Source: Macrostomum lignano
Taxonomy: Eukaryota
Direction of reading: 5' to 3'
Length of the DNA stretch: 64,000 nucleotides
NCBI GenBank assembly: GCA_002269645.1
Contig: NIVC01000557.1
Coordinates: 124,001 to 188,000 of the forward strand
In this document: in pieces, positions 5,556 through 51,669 of the stretch
Position numbering within the stretch: position 1 is the first letter of the stretch
Layout: each line of letters opens with the position of its first letter
Notes under the pieces: generated by a model
Databases searched by the model: none
What the model was told of the DNA's origin: nothing
The model's input: only the letters and a program-made list of their open reading frames with translations
Translations under genes and position numbers: made by a program

Positions 5556-6119
5556 GCGTGGCATATCTAGTTATTCTGGTCTCTGTGGGATTAATAAGGC
5601 TGCACATATAGTTCTACATGTAGTATTACAACTGATTAAAACTTGTTGAGCCTGAGTAGATATTATGTTGACTGTTAAAGTACTTTTTACACCTTTCATT
5701 TTATGGGCTCTACTGGAGGGCGAACAAAACGGCGAAGCAATTTGCAACCAACGAAGATTTTTGACTGCCTATTATATAAGGAAAGAAGCGTTTTTAGGCG
5801 CTTCTATTATCTGCAGAGCTGTTTTTTTGTCTCTTTTATTGTGCATAGAGAACGGGGGTTATGTTGTTTATTTCACTTATATATGAGTGCCTTGTACAGT
5901 AGTAGAGTTTGAGACAAGATCCCCTGAGGCGCTAGTTTCTTAAAGCTACTTAAGTCTTCTCTCGTTCTGACGCGAAAACAGCTATAGAATTAAAAAAGGC
6001 AGTTTTTACCTCAACTCTGCCCAGAAAGCCAGAAGCTTTCTTTAATTAATTCTATCATACAAATAACTATGTCGAGCCACGGGTTTAGTTTAGATTTTGC
6101 TTTTATTGCATCAGAGAAG

Positions 6120-23772: not shown

Positions 23773-26700
23773 ATGCGTTCATTGACCTGCTGCACACTGG
23801 ATCAGCTGGGGCAACAGCAGCCCCAACAACTGCGGCAGCAATGCAAAGTTAATGAACCTGCAGTTAAACTAAATAAAGAGCATTCCATGAGCGCAGATAA
23901 TTTCGATCCTGTTTGTCAAATGATTATTCATAATCGAGTTTTGACTATACTTACTCGACAACATTCGTCATTGTTTGATGCTGTAGGAGACACTGGCAGT
24001 AGCTTACCTATTCGAGCTCATTCTTGCCAAGTGGTTGCTAAGCGGATGTGCAAAGCTACTGGTTTGGAGCACTTTCTAACTCGACTGTATCCTGTTGGAT
24101 TGTAAGTGTCTGCTTGACAAATGAAAATGGATTAAGAAAGTATTGAAACACCCACTGAAGAATTAGAAAAGACGATTAGCATCCATTGGAAGATTAAGAG
24201 AGGGTCAGCTAAGGTATTAGCGTGTGCTAAAGGATTATCTAGAGGATTAGCGTGTGCTGAAGGATTATCTAGGGGGTTGGCGTGTGCAGAAGGATTACCT
24301 AGGGGATTGGCGTGTGCTGAAGGATTATCTAGGGGATTGGTGTGTGCTAAAGGATTATCTAGCGGATTAACGTGTGCTGAAGGATTATCTAGAGGATTAG
24401 TGGGTGCTGAAGGATTATCTAAAGGATTAGTGGGTGCTGAAGGATTATCTAGAGGATTAGTGGGTGCTGAAGGATTATCTAGAGGATTAACGGGTGCTGA
24501 AGGATTATATAGAGGATTAGCGGGTTCTAGAGGATCTAGAATCTAGAAAATCTAGAGGATTATCGTAAGGGTTTTTCATCTAGAATATTTTCTTTACTGT
24601 TGCTAAGCAAGCATCGATCGATGCTTAACTATACCGAATCTCCGCAGAGCCGAAGACAGATGGCTGACCAAAGCAGAGCTAGCAGATCTGCAACAATCGC
24701 TCAGACCAATCCAAGAAGCTGATGAAGAGCCCACTGTTATCAGTTCCTCAATATCGGGATCAGCATCCCTGATATCCTATTGCTCTTCTTCATCGTCAGC
24801 ATCCTCCACAGCTGGATCTTCTCTATCCTCAGCGTCTTCGACATCATCAGCAATCTCAGAGGCAATTTCCGCGCCAACACCACCAACTCAGAACCTCGCG
24901 GATTCAACTTTCGCCGAACCAATTTCTGTTTCTTCTGCTTCTTCTAAAAGTAAAGTTAATATTAAACCGGCATCGAAAACTGTAACTGTTGGCAGTAAAA
25001 GTGAGAATATTTTATTGCATTGTAGCTTTTTTTTAACTTATGTCAGTCAGTTGTCATTTAATAACTTGCATTCTTTATTTTCTCTATTTTGTTTTAAGAT
25101 TCCAATTCCGCAACCCAAGAACGGTGCAAGCGGCGATGCAAGCGTTTCAGACATTTTACAGGTAATTAAATCGAGTTAGTGTACTTGGCAATGATTCATC
25201 AAAGTGGGAACAATCTACTGCCACAAATAATTGAGGTAGGCGCCATTTTATTTGAGGTTGGCGCCATTCCATTTTAGGTAGGCGCCATTTCATTTGAGTT
25301 AGGCGCCATTTTATTTGAGGTAGGCGCCATTTCATTTGAGGTAGGCGCCATTTTATTTGAGGTAGGCGCCATTTCATTCGAGGTAGGCGCCATTTCATTT
25401 GAGGTTGGCGCCATTTTATTTGAGGTTGGCGCCATTTCATTCGAGGTAGGCGCCATTTTATTTGAGGTTGGCGCCATTTTATTTGAGGTTGGCGCCATTT
25501 CATTTGAGATAGGCGCCATTTCATTCGAGGTAGGCGCCATTTCATCTGAGGTAGGCGCCATTTTATTTGAGGTAGGCGCCATTTCATTCGAGGTAGGCGC
25601 CATTTCATTTGAGGTTGGCGCCATTTCATTTGAGGTTGGCGCCATTTCATTCGAGGTAGGCGCCATTTTATTTGAGGTAGGCGCCATTTCATTCGAGGTA
25701 GGCGCCATTTCATTTGAGGTTGGCGCCATTTTATTTTAGGTTGGCGCCATTTCATTCGAGGTAGGCGCCATTTTATTTGAGGTTGGCGCCATTTTTTTTT
25801 AGGTTGGCGCCATTTCATTCGAGATAGGCGCCATTTCATTCGAGGTAGGCGCCATTTCATTCGAGGTAGGCGCCATTTTATTTGAGGTAGGCGCCATTTC
25901 ATTCGAGGTAGGCGCCATTTCATTTGAGGTTGGCGCCATTTCATTTGAGGTTGGCGCCATTTCATTCGAGGTAGGCGCCATTTTATTTGAGGTTGGCGCC
26001 ATTCCATTTTAGGTAGGCGCCATTTCATTTGAGGTTGGCGCCATTTTATTTGAGGTTGGCGCCATTCCATTTTAGGTAGGCGCCATTTAAATTGAAAATT
26101 TAGTTATTGCTATGCACATATTAAAGCCCTATTTACATAATTCATTGCTTAGCTAAAGTCTAATTCTGTATTAAATAAATTTTGCCCATGTGCTGCGCAG
26201 TTCGAGCACCGGATTGTTACGATCGAGTTTGCCATCGGATTGTTCAGCACCAGATTTTGCACTCCAAGTCGGCTCAGTTGAAGCAGCAGCAGCACATGCA
26301 AAAACATCTGAGCGCCCAGACCGATTCTGCAAGTCGGACTCAGCTGTATCGGTGCACGACTGCCGTGGCAGTGGCAAAGCGCTCGCTGCCTAGCGCGGTA
26401 GCGCAGGTTCTGGTTCGGCACTATCCGCTGGGAGTGTGAGTGGCTGATGGCTTCTGGATGTATGGCTAGTAGGGAAATCGCTTGGATCCTCAGTAGCTGG
26501 GCCAGCCTCCCAGATCCTCAGTTGCTAAGCCAGCCTCCCAGATCCTCAGTTGCTGGGCCAGCCTCCCAGATCCTCAGTTGCTCGGCCAGCCTCCCAGATC
26601 CTCAGTTGCTGGGCCTGCCTCCCAGATCCTCAGTTGCTGGGCCAGCCTCCCAGATCCTTAGTTGCTGGGCCGGCCTCCCAGATCCTCAGTTGCTGGGCCA

Positions 26701-27760
26701 GCCTCCCAGATCCTCAGTTGCTTGGCCAGCCTCCCAGATCCCCAGTTGGTGGGCCAGCCTCCCAGATCCTCAATTGCTGGGCCAGCCTCCCAGAGTGTCA
26801 GTTGCTGGGCCAGCCTCCCAGATCCTCAATTGCTGGGCCAGCCTCCCAGAGTGTCAGTTGGTGGGCCAGCCTCCCAGAGTGTCAGTTGGTGGGCCAGCCT
26901 CCCAGAGTGTCAGTTGGTGGGCCAGCCTCCCAGAGTGTCAGTTGGTGGGCCAGCCTCCCAGAGTGTCAGTTGCTGGGCCAGCCTCCCAGATCCTCAATTG
27001 CTGGGCCAGCCTCCCAGAGTGTCAGTTGGTGGGCCAGCCTCCCAGATCCTCAATTGCTGGGCCAGCCTCCCAGATCCTCAATTGCTGGGCCAGCCTCCCA
27101 GATCCTCAATTGCTGGGCCAGCCTCCCAGAGTGTCAGTTGGTGGGCCAGCCTCCCAGATCCTCAGTTGCTGGGCCAGCCTCCCAGATCCTCAATTACTGG
27201 GCCAGCCTCCCAGAGTGTCAGTTGGTGGGCCAGCCTCCCAGAGTGTCAGTTGCTGGGCCAGCCTCCCAGAGTGTCAGTTGCTGGGCCAGCCTCCCAGATC
27301 CTCAGTTGTTAGGCCAGCCTCCCAGATCCTCAGTTGCTTGGCCAGCCTCCCAGATCCCCAGTTGGTGGGCCAGCCTCCCAGATCCTCAATTGCTGGGCCA
27401 GCCTCCCAGAGTGTCAGTTGCTGGGCCAGCCTCCCAGATCCTCAATTACTGGGCCAGCCTCCCAGAGTGTCAGTTGGTGGGCCAGCCTCCCAGAGTGTCA
27501 GTTGCTGGGCCAGCCTCCCAGAGTGTCAGTTGCTGGGCCAGCCTCCCAGATCCTCAGTTGTTAGGCCAGCCTCCCAGATCCTCAGTTGTTAGGCCAGCCT
27601 CCCAGATCTCCACGCATGGCCATTAACGCACTTTACACTCATGTTTGCCCCTTGCAGTCTAAAAGAGCAATGGATGTCGGAAGCCGAGTTTGCCAAACTG
27701 AAGCTTCTGGAAGCAAAGCAAGCAAATTTATTAAACAGCAAAGATTCTGCAAACCCTTGA
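23773..27760 (+). CDS. Uncharacterised ~360-aa protein with two chromo/Tudor-knot-like domains and a Ser-rich linker. Exons: 23773-24101, 24648-25000, 25099-25161, 26201-26435, 27658-27760.
   Basis: Four GT-AG introns have matching phases (2, 1, 1, 2), and the CDS of 1083 nt is 361 codons. Internal repeat: VVAKRMCKATGLEHFLTRLYPVGL|AEDRWLTKAEL vs AVAKRSLPSAVAQVLVRHYPLGV|LKEQWMSEAEF. The start codon is uncertain. Confidence 0.65.
24210..24545. repeat. 30-bp intronic minisatellite (ggattagcgtgtgctgaaggattatctaga)
   Basis: Direct reading. Confidence 0.9.
25235..26088. repeat. 21-bp intronic minisatellite (ggcgccatttcattcgaggta)
   Basis: Direct reading. Confidence 0.97.
26495..27606. repeat. 28-bp minisatellite family, array 1 (gggccagcctcccagatcctcagttgct / …gagtgtcagttggt)
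   Basis: Intronic tandem array; the same unit occurs at 28343 and 33612. Confidence 0.97.
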
Positions 27761-28342: not shown

Positions 28343-28724
28343 TCAGTTGCTGGGCCAGCCTCCCAGAGTGTCAGTTGCTGGGCCAGCCTCCCAGAGTGTC
28401 AGTTGCTGGGCCAGCCTCCCAGAGTGTCAGTTGCTGGGCCAGCCTCCCAGATCCTCAGTTGCTGGGCCAGCCTCCCAGATCCTCAGTTGCTGGGCCAGCC
28501 TCCCAGATTGTCAGTTGCTGGGCCAGCCTCCCAGATCCTCAGTTGCTAGGCCAGCCTCCCAGAGTGTCAGTTGGTGGGCCAGCCTCCCAGATCCTCAGTT
28601 GCTGGGCCAGCCTCCCTGATCCTCAGTTGCTGGGCCAGCCTCCCAGATTGTCAGTTGCTGGGCCAGCCTCCCAGATCCCCAGTTGCTGGGCCAGCCTCCC
28701 AGAGTGTCAGTTGGTGGGCCAGCC
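28343..28724. repeat. 28-bp minisatellite family, array 2
   Basis: Same unit and orientation as array 1. Confidence 0.95.
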
Positions 28725-29204
28725 TTCAAATTTGTCTGGGCAGAAAGGTGCGTGTAAATACTGCTTAAAAATTGCACTACTTACTACTGACAATGTTAGT
28801 ACATCGCAGACTTATAATTGTTTTGTACTTTTTTGGCCAAATCTAATTTTTTTTTGCGCTTGAGTTTTACTGCTTTCAGTTTTTTGCTTGCTTTTATCGT
28901 ATCGCAATGGCAAAGCACTTTTGTTGTCAGTGAGCCCTGAATTTGCACTGATAGTTTGCTTGACTATTATTGTCATCACTTAAAATCGTTTCCTTAATTG
29001 AACGCTATAAAGTTTATTTGTTGGCTTCTGTAATTTTTAGTGGTTTCTAATCAACATTTTAACCTGATTTGGCTAATCGCTCAGGACTTAATACTGTATT
29101 TAGCTCAATTTTTCAATTAAAAATATTCAATTTTAGCTCTAAATCATTTTTAGCAGATAGAAAGTAACGGCTGTAAGTTGTGCTTGTTTTTATTCGATAT
29201 TTCT

Positions 29205-29460: not shown

Positions 29461-30117
29461 CTCGATTCTTCCTCATTTTTTCAAATTTTCCCAATTTCAC
29501 TCTTTAATTCCCATTCCCTTTTTGAAAAGGAGTTTCCATCTAGCATTCAACTTCCATTGCAAGTTTCTGCTAGACCTGCAACTTAACTTAATTCGCTATT
29601 CATTTCGACCCAGCTCTGAGAAATGTGTAGTCAATTAGTTTATATTCATTTATTTACAAATATTATTCTAAGCTTGTAAAATCGTTAATGCTGTACAAAT
29701 AAGCTTTTTTGACAAGAAATGTCTTGCTTCCATTTATTAGTTCATATTTATTTTTTTCAATTTTCCTAATTTCTTTTTGCATGCCAGTTGCTTTGATTGC
29801 GAGATAACCGCTTGTAAAACTGAATGTTTGTTTGTTATAATTAAATTTGTGTCAAAGTTTCTAATTTTGCTTGACTTTTTTCTATCCTTTTTTAAGCATA
29901 ACAACGAGAGCTGTCCATGATTCTGACTGTTAGCTTGCAAATATTATTAATATTTAATTAATTTAATTGATTACATAACTGTTTTCTGGGTTTGTCAATT
30001 GTTATAAATATAACATTTAGCAAACCTTGCTGTGCTAAACCGTTTCTCTTCCCTTGAAACTGATTCTTCAAATGATACTGTATTTTTGATATCTGTGTTC
30101 ATCTTTTTGAGACCAAT

Positions 30118-32330
30118 TTGTGTCTTCAGCTTGTCTCTAGATTTTGTCTTCAGCTTGTCTCTAGATTGTGTCTTCAGCTTGTCTCTAGATTGTGTCTTCA
30201 GCTTGTCTCTAGATTGTGTCTTCAGCTTGTCTCTAGATTGTGTCTTCAGCTTGTCTCTAGATTGTGTCTTCAGCTTGTCTCTAGATTGTGTCTTCAGCTT
30301 GTCTCTAGATTGTGTCTTCAGCTTGTCTCTAGATTGTGGCTTCAGCTTGTCTCTAGATTGTGTCTTCAGCTTGTCTCTAGATTGTGTCTTCAGCTTGTCT
30401 CTAGATTGTGTCTTCAGCTTGTCTCTAGATTGTGTCTTCAGCTTGTCTCTAGATTGTGTCTCCAGCTCGTCTCTAGATTGTGTCTTCAGCTTGTCTCTAG
30501 ATTGTGTCTTCAGCTTGTCTCTAGATTGTGTCTTCAGCTTGTCTCTAGATTGTGTCTTCAGCTTGTCTCTAGATTGTGTCTCCAGCTCGTCTCTAGATTG
30601 TGTCTTCAGCTTGTCTCTAGATTGTGTCTTCAGCTTGTCTCTAGATTGTGGCTTCAGCTTGTCTCTAGATTGTGTCTTCAGCTTGTCTCTAGATTGTGGC
30701 TTCAGCTTGTCTCTAGATTGTGTCTTCAGCTTGTCTCTAGATTGTGTCTTCAGCTTGTCTCTAGATTGTGTCTTCAGCTTGTCTCTAGATTGTGTCTTCA
30801 GCTTGTCTCTAGATTGTGTCTCCAGCTCGTCTCTAGATTGTGTCTTCAGCTTGTCTCTAGATTGTGTCTTCAGCTTGTCTCTAGATTGTGTCTCCAGCTC
30901 GTCTCTAGATTGTGTCTTCAGCTTGTCTCTAGATTGTGTCTTCAGCTTGTCTCTAGATTGTGTCTTCAGCTTGTCTCTAGATTGTGTCTTCAGCTTGTCT
31001 CTAGATTGTGTCTCCAGCTCGTCTCTAGATTGTGTCTTCAGCTTGTCTCTAGATTGTGTCTCCAGCTCGTCTCTAGATTGTGTCTTCAGCTTGTCTCTAG
31101 ATTGTGTCTTCAGCTTGTCTCTAGATTGTGTCTCCAGCTCGTCTCTAGATTGTGTCTTCAGCTTGTCTCTAGATTGTGTCTTCAGCTTGTCTCTAGATTG
31201 TGTCTCCAGCTCGTCTCTAGATTGTGTCTTCAGCTTGTCTCTAGATTGTGTCTTCAGCTTGTCTCTAGATTGTGTCTCCAGCTCGTCTCTAGATTGTGTC
31301 TTCAGCTTGTCTCTAGATTGTGTCTTCAGCTTGTCTCTAGATTGTGTCTTCAGCTTGTCTCTAGATTGTGTCTTCAGCTTGTCTCTAGATTGTGTCTTCA
31401 GCTTGTCTCTAGATTGTGTCTCCAGCTCGTCTCTAGATTGTGTCTTCAGCTTGTCTCTAGATTGTGTCTTCAGCTTGTCTCTAGATTGTGTCTTCAGCTT
31501 GTCTCTAGATTGTGTCTTCAGCTTGTCTCTAGATTGTGTCTTCAGCTTGTCTCTAGATTGCGTCTTCAGCCTGTCTCTAGATTGTGTCTTCAGCTTGTCT
31601 CTAGATTGCGTCTTCAGCCTGTCTCTAGATTGTGTCTTCAGCTTGTCTCTAGATTGTGTCTTCAGCTTGTCTCTAGATTGTGTCTTCAGCTTGTCTCTAG
31701 ATTGTGTCTTCAGCTTGTCTCTAGATTGTGTCTTCAGCTTGTCTCTAGATTGTGTCTTCAGCTTGTCTCTAGATTGTGGCTTCAGCTTGTCTCTAGATTG
31801 TGTCTTCAGCTTGTCTCTAGATTGTGTCTTCAGCTTGTCTCTAGATTGTGTCTTCAGCTTGTCTCTAGATTGTGTCTTCAGCTTGTCTCTAGATTGTGTC
31901 TTCAGCTTGTCTCTAGATTGTGTCTTCAGCTTGTCTCTAGATTGTGTCTTCAGCTTGTCTCTAGATTGTGTCTTCAGCTTGTCTCTAGATTGTGTCTTCA
32001 GCTTGTCTCTAGATTGCGTCTTCAGCCTGTCTCTAGATTGTGTCTTCAGCTTGTCTCTAGATTGTGTCTTCAGCTTGTCTCTAGATTGTGTCTTCAGCTT
32101 GTCTCTAGATTGTGTCTTCAGCTTGTCTCTAGATTGTGTCTTCAGCTTGTCTCTAGATTGTGTCTTCAGCTTGTCTCTAGATTGTGGCTTCAGCTTGTCT
32201 CTAGATTGTGTCTTCAGCTTGTCTCTAGATTGTGTCTTCAGCTTGTCTCTAGATTGTGTCTTCAACTTGCCTCTAGATTGTGTCTCCAAGTTGTCTTTAG
32301 ATTGTGTCTCTAGATTGTCTATAGATTTTC
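30118..32330. repeat. 24-bp minisatellite, about 90 units (tgtgtcttcagcttgtctctagat)
   Basis: Direct reading. The three long ORFs here follow from a stop-free 24-bp unit. Confidence 0.98.
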
Positions 32331-32821
32331 TCCGCAGACTGTCTTTAAATTGTCTACAATTTGTTTCAAAAAATCTTGTGCACATGCATTGTTTTAACTA
32401 TGAAGTAATAAATTGTGTCTGCAGATTGTGTCCAGATTTGATGTTCCTTGTTGCTGTGAAGGGTAGCCGTGACAGTCAGTTACTTCATGCGGCTTACTGT
32501 TGTTAAAAATGCAGCAATTTTTTTACTTCCGACAAGACAAGACCACCTTGTTGAAATCGAAATTGAAACTCCATTTTCAAATGACTAACTAATTAGCTTC
32601 CAGTCCAGATGCTATTTTTAGAGCTCCACGATTTTAGACTTGGGAAAAGAAAAAACAGACGGAAAGTACCGCGGCCATAGACATGATTTTCATCATCTTC
32701 GGTACAGTTTAGCCGCTGTGAATTAGTGAACTACAGACTGCTTATTGCTCTCTTAATGTTTTAATTTATAAAAGCAGAGCCATTCAAGAGTTGAAGCAGC
32801 AACAGCACCTACTTGAAAAAT

Positions 32822-33274: not shown

Positions 33275-33611
33275 TTGATCGCTGATTGATATTAATTGCT
33301 TACTATTATTAGTAGTAAAAATTTCACATAGAGATGAATTACTGTACTCTGATGCAGATTCAATCTGAGCTAACTAGCTTAGAATCAGTTTTATTTATAG
33401 CCCAAAATACTTATTCTTGATCTGCCTCTTAGGAACTATATTATACCCGATAAATGCCCTGAAGACTGTATGAATCCTTTATAGCCTTAGTGCGACGCTG
33501 TGATTAAACGAGAATATAAATAAAAAAGCTGGTGTTTATTGATTTTAATTCTTTGATTCTCGAAGAAGTCAATCAACGGTTGCAAGTACACTAATACCTA
33601 TGGCGAATGTG

Positions 33612-34072
33612 CCAGCCTCCCAGACCCTCAGTTGCTGGGCCAGCCTCCCAGACCCTCAGTTGCTGGGACCAGCAACCCAGATCCTCAGATGCTTGGCCAG
33701 CCTCCCAGATCCTCAGTTGCTGGGCCAGCTTACCAGATCTCCAGTTGCCTGGCCAGCCTCCCAGATCCTCAGTTGCTGGGCCAGCCTCCCAGATCCTCAG
33801 TTGCTGGGCCAGCCTCCCAGACCCTCAGTTGCTGGGACCAGCAACCCAGATGCTTGGCCAGCCTCCCAGATCCTCAGTTGCTGGGCCAGCTTACCAGATC
33901 TCCAGTTGCCTGGCCAGCCTCCCAGATCCTCAGTTGCTGGGCCAGCCTCCCAGATCCTCAGTTGCTGGGCCAGCCTCCCAGATCCTCAGTTGCTAAGCCA
34001 GCCTCCCAGATCCTCAGTTGCTGGGCCAGCCTCCCAGATCCTCAGTTTCTGGGCCAGCCCCAGATCCCAGAT
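33612..34072. repeat. 28-bp minisatellite family, array 3 (more degenerate)
   Basis: Same unit and orientation; lies between the convergent TBCA and PKD2 3' ends. Confidence 0.93.
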
Positions 34073-34439: not shown

Positions 34440-37400
34440 TCAACGGTTCGATCGCTTTGAGGCGGCGGAACCGCTGCCTCGGCCGCTGGCAGACTCCAGC
34501 TGGTGCTCCGACTCGGCCGCCGCTGCCGCCGGGGGCGTCTCCTCCTCTCCGGCGCCGCCCCAGCGCTCCAATTCCTGACGCACCATGCGCTCCATCTTCT
34601 CCCGTTTCTCAGCCTCGCTGTCGCCCTCGCACTCGCCGATGGAGTCCAGCAGGCGACTCATCGTCTCGCGACGCTTCAGCTTGGCGCGCTCCATGCTCTC
34701 GAGTTTCAGCAGGACAGAGTCGATTCGATTCACGATGCCGCCGATGCTGTGCTCCATGCGGTCCACCCGGCGGGACAGCGTCGTGAACTCGTCGATGGGG
34801 ACGCCGCTGCCGCCGCCGCCGCTGTTGCTGCCGCTGGTGTTCGGTCGGCCGCCTCTGGTGGCGCTGCGCATCGAGCCGCGTAGGCTGACAGCGCCGTCTC
34901 TGTCGTCGCCTGCCAGTTCGTCGTTGTCGGCGTCTCCGTCGTCGGCGCCGACGCCGGCGCTGCCCTGGCGCTGCTGCTCCGCGCGCTCACTTTCGATTTG
35001 ACTGTTCAGGGCGGCCTGAGGGGTGCGTGGCATGCGTGGTGGGGGGGGGGATTTCTCGACGGTTTTTTTGCCATGTATCCTTCTTTGACCTCTAATTGTT
35101 CTGTAATAGCGCGATTCCTAATTCACAGATTCCTGATTCACAGATTCCTGATTCACTGATTCCTGATTCACTGATTCCTGATTCACTGATTCCTGATTCA
35201 CTGATTCCTGATTCACCGATTCCTGATTCACAGATTCCTGATTCACCGATTCCTGATTCACAGATTCCTGATTCACAGATTCCTGATTCACTGATTCCTG
35301 ATTCACTGATTCCTGATTCACTGATTCCTGATTCACTGATTCCTGATTCACCGATTTCTGATTCACCGATTCCTGATTCACAGATTCCTGATTCACAGAT
35401 TCCTGATTCACTGATTCCTGATTCACTGATTCCTGATTCACCGATTCCTAATTCACCGATTCCTGATTCACCGATTTCTGATTCACCGATTCCTGATTCA
35501 CAGATTCCTGATTCACTGATTTCTGATTCACCGATTCCTGATTCACAGATTCCTGATTCACCGATTCCTGATTCACCGATTTCTGATTCACCGATTCCTG
35601 ATTCACAGATTTCTGATTCACCGATTCCTGATTCACAGATTCCTGATTCACGGATTCCTGATTCACAGATTCCTGATTCACAGATTCCTGATTCACAGAT
35701 TCCTGATTTAAGGATTCTTGATTCACAGATTCCTGATTCACTGATTTCTTATTCACCGACCCCTGATTCACTAATCCCTGATTCACCGATTTTAAATTTG
35801 CCCATTTCGCTGCCTCACCTTTTGTCCCTCTAGCTCCCACTGCATCTTGCGCTGCTCGTCTTCGTCCAGCACCCTATCGCCGTCCATGTCGTACCGGGCA
35901 AACAGGGCCTCAATTTCGCCGTCAGCGTAGCCTCGCCTTCAATTGTGATTGGCGGTTCGGAGGCCAAAAGTAAACGCACAATTTTTTGAGGCAAGCGATG
36001 TTTGTAAGAAGGGTGTCAGCTAGGGGTCAGTTGCTTGGAAAGACGTTTTCATCAAGATACTCGTATTATTTTCGAGAACACCGTAGATGATATTGTCAGT
36101 AGAGGATGTTGTCAGTAGGGGATATTGTCAGTAGGGGATATTGTCCGTAGAGGATGTTGTCAGTAGGGGATATTGTCAGTAGGGGGATATTGTCAGTAGG
36201 GGATATTGTCAGTAGGTATTAGTGTCGGGAAATATGCTGTCAGATTGGCCAGCAGATCCCCAACTGGCTCAAACTCACATCTTCAATTCGGTTCGCCACT
36301 CCTCAAAGTCCAGCTGCCTGTCGTTGTTCATGTCAGCAGATTGCATCGCCAGTTGAATGTCGACGATTTTGTCACGTCGCAGGTGCAGCTTGTCGAGGAC
36401 ACGGCCGGCTCGCTAGGAAAGAGAAGGGGCGGTTTGAATCAGGAAAGAATAAAAGATTCGTATGGCCGACTTAAGCTGAATCTAAATGCCCTGCAATAAA
36501 TTATGTATTCTCTTAATTGCTTAAGTTTGGCGTTGCTATGGCGACGAGCAAAGTGTTACGACACAACATATAAAACTGGTCTGAACATCTAATACTATAG
36601 AATCTTAATGGATCTGTAAGTGCTGCGTTAAGCGTGATGCGCTATGTGTTTAATTTTTAATGACATTAAATGCGAGAGTTCTATTGAACAGAATGTTAAA
36701 ATTGATTTTAAGGATGAGTTCTCACAGACCTACATTGAAGCACACCTTGTGCTCCAGTTTGGCACCTCATGGTTCTCTTTTGGCGCATCTCACAGTTCCA
36801 TTTTGGCACACCTTACAGATCCATTTGGGCACATCTTACAGATGCATTTTGGAACATCTTACAGATCCATTTGGACACATCTCACAGATCTATTTTAGCA
36901 CACCTCACAGATCCGTTTGGGCACAGCAATTTGTCAGGGCTGCAGTGTTCCCTAATGCTCAAGAATCACTTAATACTAACGATTATAGTATAGTCAATAA
37001 AACCCTACCTGCTTAAAATAGTCGGTCATCTCGAAGTCGTTCGGTTGATTAGCCAGGTTGCTCTTCACCTCGCTGTACGTGTCGTTAATGATCGCCAGGA
37101 ACATGTTGATCAGCACAAAGAACACGAAGAACACGTACAGGATGAAGTAGATCGGGCCCAGCACTCGGTGCGCGTTCTGCAGACTGGCGAAGTCAAAATC
37201 GCCCAGAATGATGCGGAACAGCGTGAAAATGGCCTGCTGAAATTCTCTGAAGTCTTCAACTTTGGTGCCAAAGATCAGGTAGCCCAGCTGGGCGAAGGCG
37301 AAGAATACAATGAAGAACATCACGGCGAAGCCCAGTAAGTCTTTAGCGCAGGCGCCCAGAGTTGAACTCAACTGCGTCATGGTCTTATTAAAGCTGATGT

Positions 37401-40400
37401 ACTTGAAGATCTTCACCCAGGCGAAGAACACCGTGATAGCGATGGCCTGGTTAAACTGTTCCTGCCAAAAGCTGAGGAAGTCGAAGTCCGGATATTGAGT
37501 CTCGTCCTCCAGTAGTCTGGTGAGCTTGTTCCCAACGCTGATGGTTCGGTAGATATTGAAGGCGGCGCAGACCAGGGCAATTACAATCACGACAATGTCA
37601 AGCCAGTTCCAGAACGAGCTGAAATAAGCCAGCTTGTGCCGCTTGATCTCGATGATCTCTTCCACAATGTAGTAGCAGATGAACAGCATGAAGATGCACT
37701 CGCAGGCCAGTACGAAATAGTCGATAGGTTCAACGTAGCGCAGAAGCTTTACAGTGCGAAACTCCCAAGAGGTGAAGCCGCCGCCAGTTGCCGGGAATTC
37801 AGCTATCAATTTGATCACACAGAACAGGTTAATGTTAGCGTTGTACACTGTGAAGTCAATGAACACAGCCCTGGTAGCTCTGTCAATCCATAGGCCATGG
37901 AAGAGTTCATCAATTTTAGCAGTGGATTCTTCGCGGCTCCGGCCCAGATCGATGTAATATCCGCCGCCGTTGTACGTGGCGAGCTTGCCGGAGTAGCCGC
38001 GACCGTCTAGCTGTTGTTCGGTGCTGTAATTCCAAGCCGTCGAGTTCATGTAGCCGAACGGTTCGCGGCTCTCGGCGCTGCCGCTGTACATGGCGTAGCA
38101 GGCGCGGATGTTGGCGCGAAAATCTGTCGCGATCGAGCAGCTGTCGTTGCGGACTCGAACCTGGCGGACAGATTGCCATTTTTTGGGCAGCGTTAATAAC
38201 TATCTATAATGTTTCTAATTTGTAATTTATATAATGAGAATAATTTATTACTCCTGGCCTAATTTGGCCAGATGTGCAACCGACAGCTCAGCCGCAGCTA
38301 TTGCGCGGCGCATCTGAAGGCTGCGTACGGCTTTTCAGTCCAAGGACTGGGGGGGGGGTCGCCACACACCCTCAATTACCGCAGCTAATGCTGGCACCCA
38401 TTTTACAGCTGGGGGGGGGGGATGGCGTAGCCCAGTGGTCAAGCACGGCGCTCTGATGAGCCAGCGGCCCAGGCTCGATTCCAAGTGCAGTCACATTGAC
38501 TTGGGGCTAAACTGGAATCTCGGCTTGGCTCTGCTCGTGCAATTAACGTCCTTGAGGGCCAACCCCCAAGACACAGTGAAGTGTACATGCCTAACGATAA
38601 ATAAAGTTAGGGCCGCTGTACACTCCTGTGTGAGTGTGTGCCTGTGCGTATGACTGCGTACGTATCCGCGGCAGTAATGCCTCTCACTGGTTGTGAGACA
38701 ATGTCGCTTAAAGTGCGCCAGGTTGCATTCCCGTTTGATTCATGGCCTCTCAGCAACTCCCGCTTAACCCTGTCATCTCTCAAAATTCCACATTGATTGA
38801 TCAATCAAAATCAACAGCCAATTACCTGTCGCATCCTTGGTACGCCGAGCAGTTTGTTCTCATAGTAGATGAAATTTCGCTCTCTCGGATCGGTCACATT
38901 GGCATTGTTATACCAGGTGTCCCAGTACAGGCCGGAGATCAGGGGGCCTTGGGCGAACTGAGGGTTTAATCGGGAAAAATATCATGCCTTGGGTATTTTT
39001 CATTTTTATTACTGTCATAGCGGTGTGCCAGGAAGCCGATCGCTCACCCCCCACCAGTCCGCGAAGTTCTTCACCGACGTAAAAGTGGCACCGCTGGCGG
39101 TTGGCGTGGTCAGGAACAGCGAGTTCATCACGAACGTGTAATAGTACATTGTTGACGAGGTCATGCCGAAGGTCACTGGAATTATAAGTAGTTAATTTTA
39201 CTTACTGAATTTTTCCTTGTTACACACTAAAATGACTGTCACTGATTTGACTGTCACTGATTTGACTGTCACTGATTTGACTGTCACTGATTTGACTGTC
39301 ACTGATTTGACTGTCACTGTTTTGACTATCACTGTTTTGACTGTCACTGTTTTGACTATCCCTGACTGTCACTGTTTTGACTATCACTGTTTTGACTGTC
39401 ACTGTTTTGACTGTCACTGTTTTGACTATCACTGTTTTGACTGTCACTGTTTTGACTATCACTGTTTTGACTATCACTGTTTTGACTGTCACTGATTTGA
39501 CTGTCACTGTTTTGACTGTCACTGTTTTGACTGTCACTGTTTTGACTATCACTGTTTTGACTGTCACTGATTTGACTGTCACTGTTTTGACTGTCACTGT
39601 TTTGACTGTCACTGTTTTGACTATCACTGTTTTGACTGTCACTGATTTGACTGTCACTGTTTTGACTGTCACTGATTTGACTGTCACTGTTTTGACTGTC
39701 ACTGTTTTGACTGCCACTGACTGTCACTGTTTTGACTGTCACTGTTTCGACTGCCACTGACTGTCACTGTTTTGACTGTCACTGCTTGACTGTCACTATT
39801 TTGGCTGCCATGAATCAATCTCTGGCCCCAACCTAAACTTCAATTCTAACCCTAATTACCCTAACCCTAAACTTACTGTGCTTTATGCAGTGCCCCATAC
39901 AATTTGAATTTATAAGTACGTAAATTCGATAATAAGTCAGTGAAAGTGACGTACAGATCATTAGCACTATCAGGAACAGGCAGTAAACGATGAGCTCTCT
40001 CAGGGTGGTCTTGATGTACAGCTCTCGGTTCTCGCGAGTATCCATGGTGTAATTGGTGCGCCACACAACTGCATTTCGTGAAATGGTGATTTTGTGAGCA
40101 TCGTACAGGAAGTGTGATTGTCACAGGAAAGAAGAGGTGTAAAATTAAACTACACGTTTATAATAGCCGTGATTTAAATAAAAGAAACAAATAAAGTTGT
40201 TTAAATTTAGGCATTATAAATTATTACGAATGCAGATGACCACCAGGAATAGGCAGTACATGACCAGCTCGCGCAGAGTGGTCTTGATTTTCAACTCAGC
40301 GTTCTGCGACACATCCTCCGTGTCCTTTGTCATCCAGACGGCTGAGTGAGTCGATTTTAGATAAATGATATAGTCTTGGTTACTAGGAGCCTAGCCAGGG

Positions 40401-42283
40401 GAGCGGCTAGATGGGATCGCCACCCTCACACCCCCCTGACCCCCCTGTTCAAAGTTTTAACAGTTTTCCAACAGCTCCTTTGGCGCCATCGGTGCCCGTT
40501 TGGTGTCGGTGTGCCGTTTGATGTCGGTGTGCCGTTTCATGTCGATGTGCCGTTTGATGTCGTTGTTCCATTTGGTGTCGGTGTGCCGTTTCATGTCGGT
40601 GTGCCATTTGATGTCGTTGTTCCATTTGGTGTCGGTGTGCCGTTTCATGTCGGTGTGCCGTTTGATGTCGGTGTGCCGTTTATTGTCGGTGTGCCGTTTA
40701 TTGTCGGTGTGCCGTTTCATATCGGTGTCCCGTTTGATTTCGGTGTGCCATTTAGTGTCAGTGTGCCTTTTGGTGTCGGTGTGCCGTTTGGTGTCGGTGT
40801 GCCGTCTCATGTCGGTGTGCTGTTTATTGTCGGTGTGCCGTTTGGTTTCGGTGTGCCGTTTGGTGTCGGTGTGCCGTTTGGTGTCGGCGTGCCGTTTATT
40901 GTCGGTGTGCCATTTAGTGTCAGTATCTGTCCATCTGGGTCCTTTGAAACTTTACAATAATATAGCGATCCAGTCTGCTCAAGGTTTGGATCTCTTCTCA
41001 AATCTTTTTCTTCTCTCCTCTTGTCTCCACTCTTCTCCTTTATTCCCTTTCCTCTCATCTTTTCTCCAATCTCTCTTCTCTCCCCTCTCCCCTTCTATGG
41101 CCCAGAGTCATGCGTTCATCGGTTCTCCCGGGCAAATGGGGGCAAATGGGGGCGTCGAGTGTACAAGCCGTTGAAAAAAACTTACCGCGCACGCCTCTCT
41201 TAAACTTTCCCCAGCATCCGGTAGCCTCATCATCGGTGCCATTATTAGCCGGCATGATGGCCGCCTGGCTGCCAAAGTTCGACGAGTTCTCCAGCTGGTC
41301 GGCTGCGGCTGAAGTTGTCGGATTGTCGGCGTTGGCTTCCCAGGCCTGAATGGAACGATGAGGATTAGGGTAGAAAGTTAGCCCGAAATCGTGTTAGTTG
41401 AATGTAGGGCGCAGTTTCTGCGAAAGCAACTCCCTCTTGAGCCGTGTCTTTAACCCTAGCTCTCCCCTTGATTCTTAGCATCTCAGTATGAAGGGGTTGT
41501 AGCCTGTTGGTTAGAGCGCAGGACTCACGACTTGAAGGTCGGGGGTTCGATTCTCGACTCAATCGGAACAATTTGTGTCCTTGAGCAAGACACTTAACTC
41601 TGCATTGCTTCAGTTCACCCAGCTGTAAAATGGGTGCCAGCATTGGCTGGGGTAATTGAGGGTGTGTGTGGCGACCCCCCAGTCCTTGGACTGAACAGCC
41701 GTACGCAGCCTTCAGATGCGCCGCGCAATAGCTGCGGCTAAGCTGTCGGTTGCACATCTGGCCATTAGTCGTAGTCGTCGTGTCGCACAATCGGCGATAG
41801 GCATTACTGCCCATTCCGCCGACTCCCCTGAGCAGGCAAACACTCACACAAGAGTGTACAGCGGCCCTAACTTTATTTATCGTTAGGCATGTACACTTCA
41901 CTGTGCCTTGGGGGTTGGCCCTCAGTGGTGTTAATTGCACGAGCAGAGCCAAGCTGAGATTCCAATTTCGACCCAAATTGATGTGACTGCACTTGGAATC
42001 GAGCCTGGGCTGCTGGCACATGGATCAGAGCGCCGCGATGGACCACTGGTGGGTTACGGCCCTACTGTCTTAGCTCCTTTGTACGGAACTATACAGTGGT
42101 CATGACGGTTCTCACCTGACTGCCGCCAAGTTGACCACGCGACTGGGCCGACCCAGCCCTTACAACGTCGTCGTCGTGGACGGTGCGACGCGATTTGGCG
42201 CTCGACGCCTGCGGCTGCGTCTGCTGCTGCTCGGCTCCGCTAGCAGATTTTCGACTCCTAGCGCTGGCTGGTCTCGACGCCAT
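34440..42283 (-). CDS. PKD2: Polycystin-2 / PKD2L1-type TRPP channel, 893 aa. Exons: 42283-42116, 41345-41186, [40341-40228 or 40068-39955], 39175-39048, 38957-38826, 38160-37009, 36412-36279, 35936-35819, 35015-34440.
   Basis: All junctions are GT-AG with matching phases, and the CDS is 2682 nt with one alternative exon. Motifs: [78 protein letters not shown]-hand exons, and the coiled coil [25 protein letters not shown]. Confidence 0.96.
35110..35790. repeat. 15-bp minisatellite (ttcctgattcacaga) in the last PKD2 intron
   Basis: Direct reading. Confidence 0.97.
36095..36215. repeat. 16-bp minisatellite (ttgtcagtaggggata) in a PKD2 intron
   Basis: Direct reading. Confidence 0.9.
36532..36545. 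promoter_or_regulatory. Intronic RFX X-box GTTGCTATGGCGAC in PKD2
   Basis: Fits the X-box consensus and lies in a ciliary channel gene. Confidence 0.45.
36775..36925. repeat. ~24-bp degenerate minisatellite (tttggcacatcttacagatcca…)
   Basis: Direct reading. Confidence 0.8.
38267..38412 (-). mobile_element. SINE family 2, 3' half
   Basis: Reverse complement of cccagctgtaaaatgggtgccagc…gtcggttgcacatctggcc, as seen at 41620-41765. Confidence 0.8.
38421..38730 (+). mobile_element. SINE family 1, copy B
   Basis: A and B boxes and body match copy A, with an added 3' extension shared with copies C and D. Confidence 0.85.
39230..39800. repeat. 15-bp minisatellite (tgactgtcactgttt) in a PKD2 intron
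   Basis: Direct reading. Confidence 0.97.
40495..40925. repeat. 18-bp minisatellite (gtcggtgtgccgtttgat) in PKD2 intron 2
   Basis: Direct reading. Confidence 0.95.
41493..41765 (+). mobile_element. SINE family 2, near full-length (tRNA head, CORE-like domain, tail)
   Basis: A box TAGCCTGTTGG and B box GGTTCGATTCTC. The central tgtgtccttgagcaagacacttaactctgcattgcttcagttcacccagctgtaaaatggg resembles the MIR CORE consensus as remembered. Confidence 0.85.
41781..42062 (-). mobile_element. SINE family 1, copy C
   Basis: Reverse complement of the family 1 head and body; tail-to-tail with the SINE2 copy. Confidence 0.85.
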
Positions 42284-49840: not shown

Positions 49841-51669
49841 GTGAAAAATCCTCAACGAGCTATCCCAATCAGCATCATTTTGAGTCTGTCAATTTGCTTC
49901 GTAGCCTACTGCGGCGTCAGTTCCGTTCTCACCTTGATGCAGCCGTACTTCGCTCTGGACCCGTTGGCGCCCCTGCCTCAAGCGTTCGCCGCTCACGGTT
50001 GGCTTGTTGCCAACTATTTCATCGCTGTTGGCGCCATCTGCGCCCTGTCCACTAGCCTGCTGGGAGCCATGTTCCCTCTGCCCCGAGTGGTCTACGCCAT
50101 GGCTAGCGATGGGTTGATCTTTCGCTTTCTATCTCGGGTTCATCCGCGTCTCGCTACTCCATTAATTGCCACCGTCCTGACGGGAGTCATGGCCGGCGTC
50201 ATGGCATGCATGTTCGAGCTGAAAGCACTGGTTGACATGATGTCTATCGGTACACTACTAGCTTACACTCTTGTAGCCCTGTCTGTGCTCATACTTCGCG
50301 GTAGTTGCGACGTTTTCAACAATCGAGCAGTGTCTGCTCCGAGTGAGACCCCTAGTGGAGAGCAGCAGGTTCTGGAAGAGCCCGTTGTTGCAGCGACAAG
50401 CTCAATGAAAACTGTACTGGTCGACGTTGAGGAAACCGACTTTGTTGAGCTCATTGAGTCTACCAGAGCAGATAAATTTACGCTTAAATCCTATCTGAGC
50501 TGCTCATTCCGTAGAGGTGGCTACTCTGAGCCGAACAATCTGACTGAACAGGTCACTCGAGTCAACTCCGGCTTATTTATGATCTCAGCAGGTGTGTTGG
50601 CATTCGTACTTGAGCGGATGCCCAACCAACTGGGAGCTGGCAGGCCAGAAGCAGTGATCCCGGCATCCATTGCCTGCCTACTGTGTCTGTTAGCCATGAT
50701 CAGTTTGGCCATGCAGCCGCAGAGTCGAAAACCAGTGGCTTTTAAGGTAATGCTATTTCATATGTCTTAAAGTGGTAAAGAAATTTATAAAGGGTTGACC
50801 TGATGCTCACAAATGTTATTCCTGTGTCGCTTTGTAGACCCTTTGTAAACCGCGGCCTTTTTAGAGGCAGGGGCCTGTGTGCACCCTGGCGCACTTTAAA
50901 CGACATTGTCGCACAACCGGCGTGAGGCATTGCTGCCCATTCCGCCGACTCCCCTGAGCAGGCACACAAGCGCGCGGATACGTACGCAGTCATACGCACA
51001 GGCACACACTCACACAGGAGTGTACAGCAGCCCTAACTTTATTTATCGTTAGGCATGTACACTTCACTGTGCCTTGGGGGTTGGCCGTCAAGAGCGTTAA
51101 TGGCACGAGCAGAGCCAAGCCGAGATTATCTAGCCCCAAATTAATCTGATTGCACATGGAATCGAACCTGGGCTGCTGGCTACAGCCCCTACGGAACCTT
51201 TGACCACGTACATTTTGCAGATGTGAATGAAAAAAATTAAAAAGGTTGAAATTAACTGTAAAACTTATCGTAACAATCAGAATGTTACAAATCAATTCTA
51301 AGGTTATTTTCGTACGACAGATGCACGTTCCTGTAATCCTGTCATCGACATCGAACTAAAACCAACACTGATTGTCCTTATTTACCTTGGCTCTCACAGG
51401 TGCCCTGGGTGCCGTACCTTCCGTGTCTGTCTATCCTGGCCAATCTCTACCTGATGACCGCCCTATCAAGCAGTACATGGATTCGATTTATAGTCTGGAG
51501 CGCTATCGGATTCCTTATTTACTTTGGCTACGGCCTGTTGCACAGCAACGAGCACGCGGTTCAGACTCGGCCGGTGCTGCTGCTAGCGGCAGAGCAACAA
51601 AACCGGACATTGGTAGCCAACGGTGTTGGTGGCCGCGATAATCAGCAAATAAATAATTTGCACTTGTAA
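49841..51669 (+). CDS. SLC7A cationic amino-acid transporter (CAT/slimfast-like), 3' half only. Exons: 49841-50746, 51400-51669 (stop).
   Basis: [55 protein letters not shown] and AFK|[19 protein letters not shown]…WIRFIVW…GFLIYFGYG. The junction is phase 0, and the first exon begins at an AG acceptor in mid-protein. Confidence 0.9.
50830..51190 (-). mobile_element. SINE family 1, copy D (5'-truncated, longest 3' part) in the SLC7A intron
   Basis: Reverse complement of the family 1 body with the B box ggttcgattcc. Confidence 0.8.

Follow-up and report, generated by a model that had tools for sequence, protein, structure and literature searches.

A tandemly duplicated pre-S1/S1 exon in a TRPP (PKD2-like) channel gene of Macrostomum lignano and its counterparts in other phyla

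Tandem duplicated exon substitutions are ancient, are enriched in ion channels, and have arisen convergently between phyla (Martinez-Gomez et al. 2022, PMC9741552), with channel examples that include voltage-gated Na+ and Ca2+ channels and a calcium-activated K+ channel (Copley 2004, as cited in PMC9741552). Here, we describe a pair of tandem exons, 3a and 3b, in a PKD2-like gene of the TRPP channel family in the flatworm Macrostomum lignano; the gene lies in a 64-kilobase (kb) stretch of contig NIVC01000557.1, which is called the window throughout. Two well-known modes of exon control serve as points of reference: exons 2 and 3 of alpha-tropomyosin are mutually exclusive through steric hindrance, and the exon clusters of Dscam and 14-3-3zeta are controlled by competing RNA structures (docking and selector elements). 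Polycystin-2-type channels have a central role in ciliary signalling and in human polycystic kidney disease, and the control of their gating by the cytoplasmic pre-S1 region is still being worked out.

The pair probably stems from a tandem duplication that took place long ago, after which both copies were kept and came to be spliced one or the other, giving two channels of 893 amino acids (aa) each. From gene models and comparative sequence we infer that 3b is actually spliced in the window gene and that use of the two exons is strictly exclusive. Identifiers of the form P#### and L### denote proteins and genomic loci, respectively, in the comparison sets.

The exon pair and the channel segment it encodes

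The two exons and the intron between them are as follows.

40228..40341, minus strand: exon 3a, the divergent version, encoding (A) + 37 residues + (L); present in the GenBank models of all three gene copies
39955..40068, minus strand: exon 3b, the canonical type, encoding (V) + 37 residues + (L); absent from the GenBank model
40069..40227, minus strand: spacer intron between 3a and 3b, 159 nucleotides (nt), AT-rich, GT-AG; candidate regulatory intron

Each exon is 114 nt long, has phase 1-1, and holds one stop-free frame that continues the frame of the upstream exon. The flanks read ...ctcactcAG before and GTaataa after 3a, and ...aaatgcAG before and GTacgtc after 3b. Exon 2 ends in ...GTGCGCG/gtaag (slashes mark exon borders), and its final G completes a GCC codon (Ala) with 3a or a GTT codon (Val) with 3b; at the other end, the exon 4 acceptor, ccag/TGACCTTC, supplies the TG that follows the last C or T of exon 3 to make CTG or TTG, both of which encode Leu. 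The exons are identical at 71 of 114 nt (62%) and at 24 of 39 aa including the junction codons, and a tblastn search with 3a recovers the 3b locus at E = 1e-12 in the 64-kb window, in which no third copy of exon 3 was found by the same method. Adjacent and homologous, equal in length and phase, and interchangeable between their flanking exons, they yield an 893-aa product with either exon and a 932-aa product, still in frame, with both. The original prediction had described two open 114-nt exons of phase 1-1 with AG/GT ends and a common Leu codon with exon 4, set 159 nt apart and capable of in-frame double inclusion; this geometry was confirmed in the sequence, and the peptides given for 3a and 3b match our retranslation exactly.

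That the second exon is a chance open frame, or an artefact of assembly that duplicated a single exon, has to be considered for an assembly that is repeat-rich and redundant (PMC5730564). The exons are just 62% identical in nucleotides, however, so they are no recent assembly duplicate, and the pair is present in three independent contigs as well as in a diverged paralog. This explanation is refuted for practical purposes, and we give it a negligible probability.

According to structure alignment, the exon maps to residues ~199-237 of human PKD2 and codes for the pre-S1 helix and the cytoplasmic two thirds of the first transmembrane (TM) segment, S1, which bears out the earlier assignment of this segment to pre-S1/S1. 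Exon 2 of human PKD2 (c.596-709) is likewise 114 nt long, and on that account the exon appears to be old and conserved in position. A 14-residue string in 3b is identical to human PKD2L1 (6du8 alignment), in agreement with the proposal that the second exon is close to this protein. In 3a and 3b alike, the Trp at exon position 3 corresponds to W201 of PKD2 and W81 of PKD2L1 in the alignment, and both flatworm exons keep this Trp together with a KTTLREL core. The two predicted isoforms differ at 15 of 39 residues, nine of them in a 16-residue stretch of pre-S1 and six, all conservative, in S1; the net charge of pre-S1 is about -1 in the acidic 3a version and about +1 in 3b, which has three Arg residues.

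The functional weight of this segment is known from TRPP3 and TRPP2, in which W81 of TRPP3 or W201 of TRPP2 in pre-S1 binds K568 or K688 of the TRP-like domain (Zheng et al. 2018, PMC6483072). This contact is needed for channel activation and is disrupted by phosphatidylinositol 4,5-bisphosphate (PIP2), and deletion of W81-L95 abolishes channel activation (PMC6483072). Because this exon encodes the Trp through which pre-S1 is coupled to the TRP-like domain, an exon swap would be expected to retune gating, lipid regulation, or the packing of S1 against its partners and to leave the pore untouched. The gene would then make two channels with different set-points for gating or lipids, or with different S1 packing.

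The gene is BOX15_Mlig009305g3 of M. lignano, and the model built with 3a matches GenBank PAA80947.1 (P0121) exactly. All ten exons of the gene model have AG/GT ends, and its parts other than the pair are listed here.

34440..42283, minus strand: whole TRPP (PKD2-like) gene model; nine constitutive exon positions plus the duplicated exon; 893 aa
42283-42116, minus strand: exon 1
41345-41186, minus strand: exon 2, with a phase-1 end that feeds 3a or 3b
39175-39048, minus strand: exon 4, end of S1 and start of the polycystin/TOP domain; accepts 3a or 3b
38957-38826, minus strand: exon 5
38160-37009, minus strand: exon 6, 1152 nt, fused; polycystin domain through S6
36412-36279, minus strand: exon 7
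35936-35819, minus strand: exon 8
35015-34440, minus strand: exon 9

Precomputed Pfam matches on the identical protein cluster comprise PF20519 (Polycystin_dom), PF08016 (PKD_channel), PF00520 (Ion_trans), and a C-terminal EF-hand, and a coiled-coil motif, VDRMEHSIG, is visible in the gene model. The protein contains a polycystin (TOP) domain between S1 and S2 and a six-TM ion-transport core, and phmmer matches spanning pre-S1 to S3 reach E = 4e-130 to human PKD2L1 (6du8) and E = 6e-123 to PKD2 (5k47). On these domain and structure matches, assignment to the PKD2/PKD2L1-like TRPP channels is secure, as the original prediction had proposed. The region equivalent to exon 6 is split over many exons in human PKD2, and by this comparison the channel core has undergone extensive intron loss, with the N-terminal intron positions retained.

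Exon use and selection in gene copies, paralogs, and other phyla

The M. lignano assembly has three copies of the gene that are ~95-98% identical, g1 (L002), g2 (L001), and g3 (the window), and the GenBank proteins of these copies (P0001, P0121, P0122) all contain 3a and none 3b. The annotation was made by genome-guided transcriptome assembly with StringTie and TACO at --isoform-frac 0.75, followed by reduction to 'coregenes' without alternative transcripts (PMC5730564). 3a is the RNA-supported dominant form; the missing 3b isoform carries low weight because the pipeline discards minor isoforms.

The genome also encodes several PKD2-like paralogs with ~66% protein identity to the window gene, all of which carry the 3b type of exon. 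By tblastn, the paralog Mlig004710g1 (L005) has two versions of exon 3, a 3a-like one at 5665-5778 and a 3b-like one at 5942-6055; both measure 114 nt, have phase 1-1 and AG/GT ends, and are separated by a 163-nt spacer. In the annotated protein of this paralog (P0003), exon 3 is the 3b-like version, and its 3a-like exon has no annotation, which is the mirror image of the window gene. The GenBank models record reciprocal dominant use, 3a in Mlig009305 and 3b in Mlig004710. Selection was estimated by the Nei-Gojobori method on 37 codons of the window gene and Mlig004710. Between the paralogs, the proportions of synonymous (pS) and nonsynonymous (pN) differences are 0.76 (saturated) and 0.135 for 3b against 3b, and 0.62 and 0.25 for 3a against 3a, and within each gene 3a and 3b differ at a pN of 0.29-0.35. 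When a third paralog, Mlig009158, is used to split the nonsynonymous divergence (dN) three ways, the branches amount to ~0.11 for 3b of the window gene, 0.04 for 3b of Mlig004710, and 0.11 for the constitutive exon of Mlig009158; with equal branches of ~0.11 and 0.11, the unannotated 3b has not changed faster than an exon whose use is obligatory. The presence of the pair in both paralogs and the pS and pN values place the exon duplication before the gene duplication, with both exons constrained since. These substitution values show purifying selection on 3a and on 3b. The paralog comparison, which followed the suggestion in the original prediction that relatives be searched for the pair and selection estimated, is the strongest sequence evidence that the pair has a function.

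The same exon is alternative in two other phyla. In the amphioxus Branchiostoma lanceolatum, RefSeq isoforms X1 and X2 (871 aa each) differ only in the 38-residue segment of this exon, and reading of the sequences of B. floridae X1 and X2 places their difference in the same segment. The Branchiostoma exons are 114 nt long and in tandem, canonical first, at a distance of 67 nt in B. lanceolatum (L003) and 71 nt in B. floridae (L011). In the brachiopod Lingula anatina, isoforms X1 and X2 of gene 1 differ only in this exon, where, in tandem, a divergent exon of 117 nt precedes a canonical one of 114 nt at a distance of 243 nt; isoforms X1/X3 and X2 of gene 2 switch the same exon, with tandem exons of 114 and 120 nt that lie 262 nt apart. 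Phase 1-1 is common to all pairs in Lingula and Branchiostoma, and both versions in each pair retain the Trp and the TTLREL core; the isoforms come from the automated RefSeq pipeline. The two Lingula genes stand head-to-tail on LFEI02000049.1 (L004 at 606-621 kb and L010 at 622-633 kb), each with a pair of its own, and because both neighbours carry one, the Lingula pair is older than that gene duplication.

The divergent exon comes first in both M. lignano and Lingula gene 1, and residues are held in common by the first-position exons (W-x-T-K/R-D/E-T-V/E-D-V/A-S/T) and by the second-position exons (T-x-D/E-T-K/R) of M. lignano and Lingula, which hints at a shared origin. The amphioxus pair has the reverse order and looks independent in origin. 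In its spacer, which is 79% conserved between the two species, the upstream donor and a consensus branch site (TACTAAC or TACTGAC) are just ~33-36 nt apart, and steric exclusion is plausible from this arrangement.

The annotated isoforms of oysters, Haliotis, Patella, Gigantopelta, Tubulanus, Ptychodera, Glandiceps, Patiria, Apostichopus, Ciona, S. purpuratus, Actinia, Hydractinia, and Watersipora show no difference in this exon. A motif scan for a second TTLREL-type exon found none in the nemertean Lineus (L008) or the cestode Rodentolepis (L009); the extra matches in these two were rejected as a chance match in exon 1 and a stop-ridden frame. Four transcripts (P0009, P0010, P0011, P0034) encode full-length PKD2-like proteins that are 57-59% identical to the window protein, and a fifth record, P0127, is a 315-aa fragment with 51% identity; in all five, the exon-3 segment carries the 3a-type ELKIK signature in place of the usual RELH/YVK. 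In Symsagittifera roscoffensis, polycystin-2-like X2 (P0117) and X1 (P0299) are identical except at residues 96-139. There, one homologous segment replaces another in the exon that follows, the counterpart of exon 4 in the window gene, which covers the end of S1 and the beginning of the polycystin domain. This acoel swap probably represents a further tandem-exon substitution in a TRPP gene, independent of the first.

A wider proposal, which we put forward tentatively and hold to be possible rather than probable, is that the pair is a long-lived TRPP switch module that dates from or before the spiralian ancestor, survived gene duplications in flatworm and brachiopod, and was independently re-invented in cephalochordates. 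Each exon version would confer its own pre-S1/TRP-like coupling and PIP2 sensitivity, in different types of ciliated cell, and the conserved 159-163-nt spacer would carry the signal for the choice.

Rival readings and the control of exon choice

A number of findings weigh against the splicing of 3a and 3b as alternatives. The exact 3b-only isoform B is absent from the protein collections searched, in which no 3b fragment was found either, and the sole 3b-containing record of the gene, the UniRef model P0126, also contains 3a. Two other paralogs, Mlig009158 (L006) and Mlig005060 (L007), manage with a single exon of the 3b type; neither has a second exon 3, and their introns are too short to hide one. 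The alignment of the three gene copies (621 nt) contains a single substitution in 3a (CTG to TTG, Leu) and a single one in 3b (GTT to GTG, Val), both synonymous, against ~16 events, including a 7-nt indel, in 385 nt of flanking and spacer intron. This difference favours constraint on both exons, but the three-copy statistics are weak (at the pooled rate, Poisson p ~0.04 for <=2 changes in 228 coding nt). With its 159 nt, the spacer could itself be removed by splicing, and a messenger with both exons would stay in frame; no feature that enforces the choice was found. Inverted repeats between exon 2 and exon 4 have only arms of <=17 nt that are 80-92% complementary, none sensibly placed; a single-sequence fold of 587 nt around both exons has z = -1.37, which is not significant; and alignments of the window gene with L005 upstream of 3a and downstream of 3b contain no conserved blocks and no docking/selector pairing. 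RNAalifold predicts one helix, with the following arms.

40229..40245, minus strand: predicted helix arm 1, end of 3a, complementary to the 3b acceptor region; a lead only
40054..40075, minus strand: predicted helix arm 2, the 3b acceptor AG (40070-40069) and the first 15 nt of 3b; a lead only

This helix includes a perfect 7-base-pair stretch, CUGCAUU/AAUGCAG, over the AG and also occurs in the single-sequence minimum free energy structure. If formed, it would mask just those two splice sites that a 3a-3b junction requires. It is treated as a lead only; it is intact in the three gene copies, and 9 of its 17 pairs are broken in Mlig004710. The suggestion that an RNA structure is implied, and that folding would expose docking and selector pairings, thus finds no good support in the inverted repeats, folds, intron alignments, or RNAalifold prediction.

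Some of these findings fit another history, in which the ancestor used both exons, Mlig009305 later settled on 3a and Mlig004710 on 3b, and the unused partner in each has simply not decayed; a variant is that use of 3b may have been lost very recently. The three GenBank models of the window gene are 3a-only and the paralog model is 3b-only, no 3b-only record of the window gene was found, and in two other paralogs the second exon was lost or never present. It is a known pattern that alternative splicing and gene duplication are inversely related, and such a division of exons between paralogs agrees with it. Against a silent relic, synonymous sites between the paralogs are saturated, yet 3b retains its low pN, and its dN branch does not exceed that of the constitutive exon of Mlig009158. 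Every copy of the pair, in either gene, retains its frame, length, phase, and splice sites at both ends, the inter-exon spacer is conserved, and the annotation pipeline drops minor isoforms by design. We regard the relic, the foremost of the rival readings, as unlikely and prefer continued alternative use of both exons, for which the evidence is comparative, from the paralog, Lingula, and Branchiostoma. The part of the original prediction that held mutually exclusive use to be likely stands on that comparative footing; no 3b transcript of the window gene was found.

Inclusion of both exons in one messenger, giving a 932-aa protein with a repeated pre-S1/S1 unit, would preserve the frame, and the 159-nt spacer has standard GT-AG ends; P0126 has 3a followed by 3b, and the old Lingula model P0295 contains both exons. 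P0126 is fused, however, to an unrelated upstream reading frame (window ~49892-50128), as is typical of ab initio prediction, which it looks like. Transcript-derived GenBank models carry one exon, and the current RefSeq isoforms of Lingula and Branchiostoma are strictly one or the other. An extra TM helix before the polycystin domain would, moreover, invert the topology of everything downstream, and one-or-other use is expected for this reason. Joint inclusion is very improbable in our judgement, and one-or-other splicing is again preferred. Other models from the older assembly also go wrong here: in UniProt, P0123 reads through the 3a donor and stops and P0124 starts in exon 4, such that P0123, P0124, and P0126 break or mis-join exactly at the duplicated exon.

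If the exons are chosen one at a time, the spacer between them is a candidate place for the signal. The 159-nt spacer of the window gene and the 163-nt spacer of Mlig004710 share 92 invariant columns (58%), against 50 columns (31%) when one of them is reverse-complemented and 53-54 (33-34%) for the introns that flank the pair on either side. The conserved blocks are AACTTTAT, TTAATTTTnCAC, AATCACA, and TTCACnAAAT, and a conserved yTCAC, the probable branch site, lies ~25-30 nt upstream of the 3b acceptor. Conservation of the spacer although synonymous sites are saturated suggests that it is functional, as is typical of regulated alternative exons. The donors of 3a (TTC/GTAATA) and 3b (TCT/GTACGT) are weaker than those of the constitutive exons, which are mostly G/GTRAGT. 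Our best guess is a regulated choice through elements in the conserved spacer together with the weak splice sites of both exons.

Three other means of enforcement were considered and set aside. A frame shift with nonsense-mediated decay is ruled out by exon length, as had been foreseen, since 114 = 3 x 38. U12-type introns are ruled out by reading of the donors, GTAATA and GTACGT, and all four splice sites are GT-AG without U12 consensus. Steric exclusion was judged unlikely in the flatworm, given a 159-nt spacer with the likely branch site near the 3b acceptor.

Minisatellites are present in nearly all long introns of the gene.

39233-39807: 15-mer x39, in the intron flanking the exon pair
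40496-40915: 18-mer x23, in the intron flanking the exon pair
35113-35791: 15-mer x45
36089-36216: 16-mer x8
36778-36925: 23-mer x6

The two that flank the exon pair are not complementary to each other. The intron after 3b also contains a short telomere-like run, TTAGGGTTAGGGTAATTAGGGTTAG, at ~39850-39890 on the minus strand. An interspersed repeat is common to intron 1 (41368-42024) and to 50899-51355, 9 kb upstream, and inverted copies of other intron segments occur at further sites in L001 and L002; the repeat in intron 1 and the inverted copies are probably fragments of transposable elements. Just downstream of the gene, at 29998-32397 on the minus strand, a 2.4-kb stop-free array of ~100 copies of KLKTQSRD with a 24-nt period is a minisatellite that mimics an 800-aa open reading frame. 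A dispersed repeat, one frame of which reads GSGRLAQQLRIWEAGPATEDLGGWPSN, occurs at 33594-33985, 28598-28780, 27277-27441, 26661-26825, and 26393-26524, several of these downstream of the gene.

Comparison with known tandem exon systems

A literature search for PKD2, polycystin-2, TRPP, or PKD2L1 with mutually exclusive or tandem duplicated exons found no description of such a case, and nothing was found with Macrostomum or with the gene names Mlig009305 and Mlig004710. The earlier statement that no such pair was known in PKD2 accordingly holds for the literature searched and fails for the databases, where isoforms from other phyla already contain the pair. For annotation, the current M. lignano models of two genes each lack one exon of the pair, and the older ones break or mis-join there. 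A natural, selection-tested pre-S1 swap in flatworm, brachiopod, and amphioxus offers ready-made channel pairs, different in this region alone, for electrophysiology and for comparison of lipid binding.

The pair resembles the exons of the Na+, Ca2+, and K+ channels in being adjacent, homologous, and equal in length and phase and in encoding a TM segment of a six-TM channel; it is also old, under purifying selection in both members, and recurrent in orthologues of distant phyla. It differs from them in family, TRPP, and in the swapped segment, which is pre-S1/S1 and not the voltage sensor or the pore. The pairs of Lingula and Branchiostoma agree with that of M. lignano in being formed by the homologous exon, in tandem, with phase 1-1 and 114 nt (117 or 120 nt for one Lingula member per pair). 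Order and spacing set them apart: canonical first and 67-71 nt in amphioxus, divergent first and 159-243 nt in M. lignano and Lingula gene 1, and 262 nt in Lingula gene 2.

The amphioxus arrangement, with a branch site ~33-36 nt from the upstream donor, has the alpha-tropomyosin-like geometry that blocks exon-to-exon splicing; the flatworm spacer, with 159 nt and a likely branch site near the 3b acceptor, does not. The window pair is akin to the Dscam and 14-3-3zeta clusters as a two-member homologous, in-frame cluster with a splice-competent spacer, an arrangement for which control of this type is commonly invoked, and unlike them in having no conserved complementary intronic elements between the paralogs, a fold z of -1.37, and a sole helix that is unconserved. 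The phenomenon itself is already known in ion channels; what is added is the same gating-linked exon in three phyla and a pair that has outlived gene duplications in two of them. With it, the TRPP family joins the ion channels that show repeated or ancient homologous exon substitution by tandem duplication.

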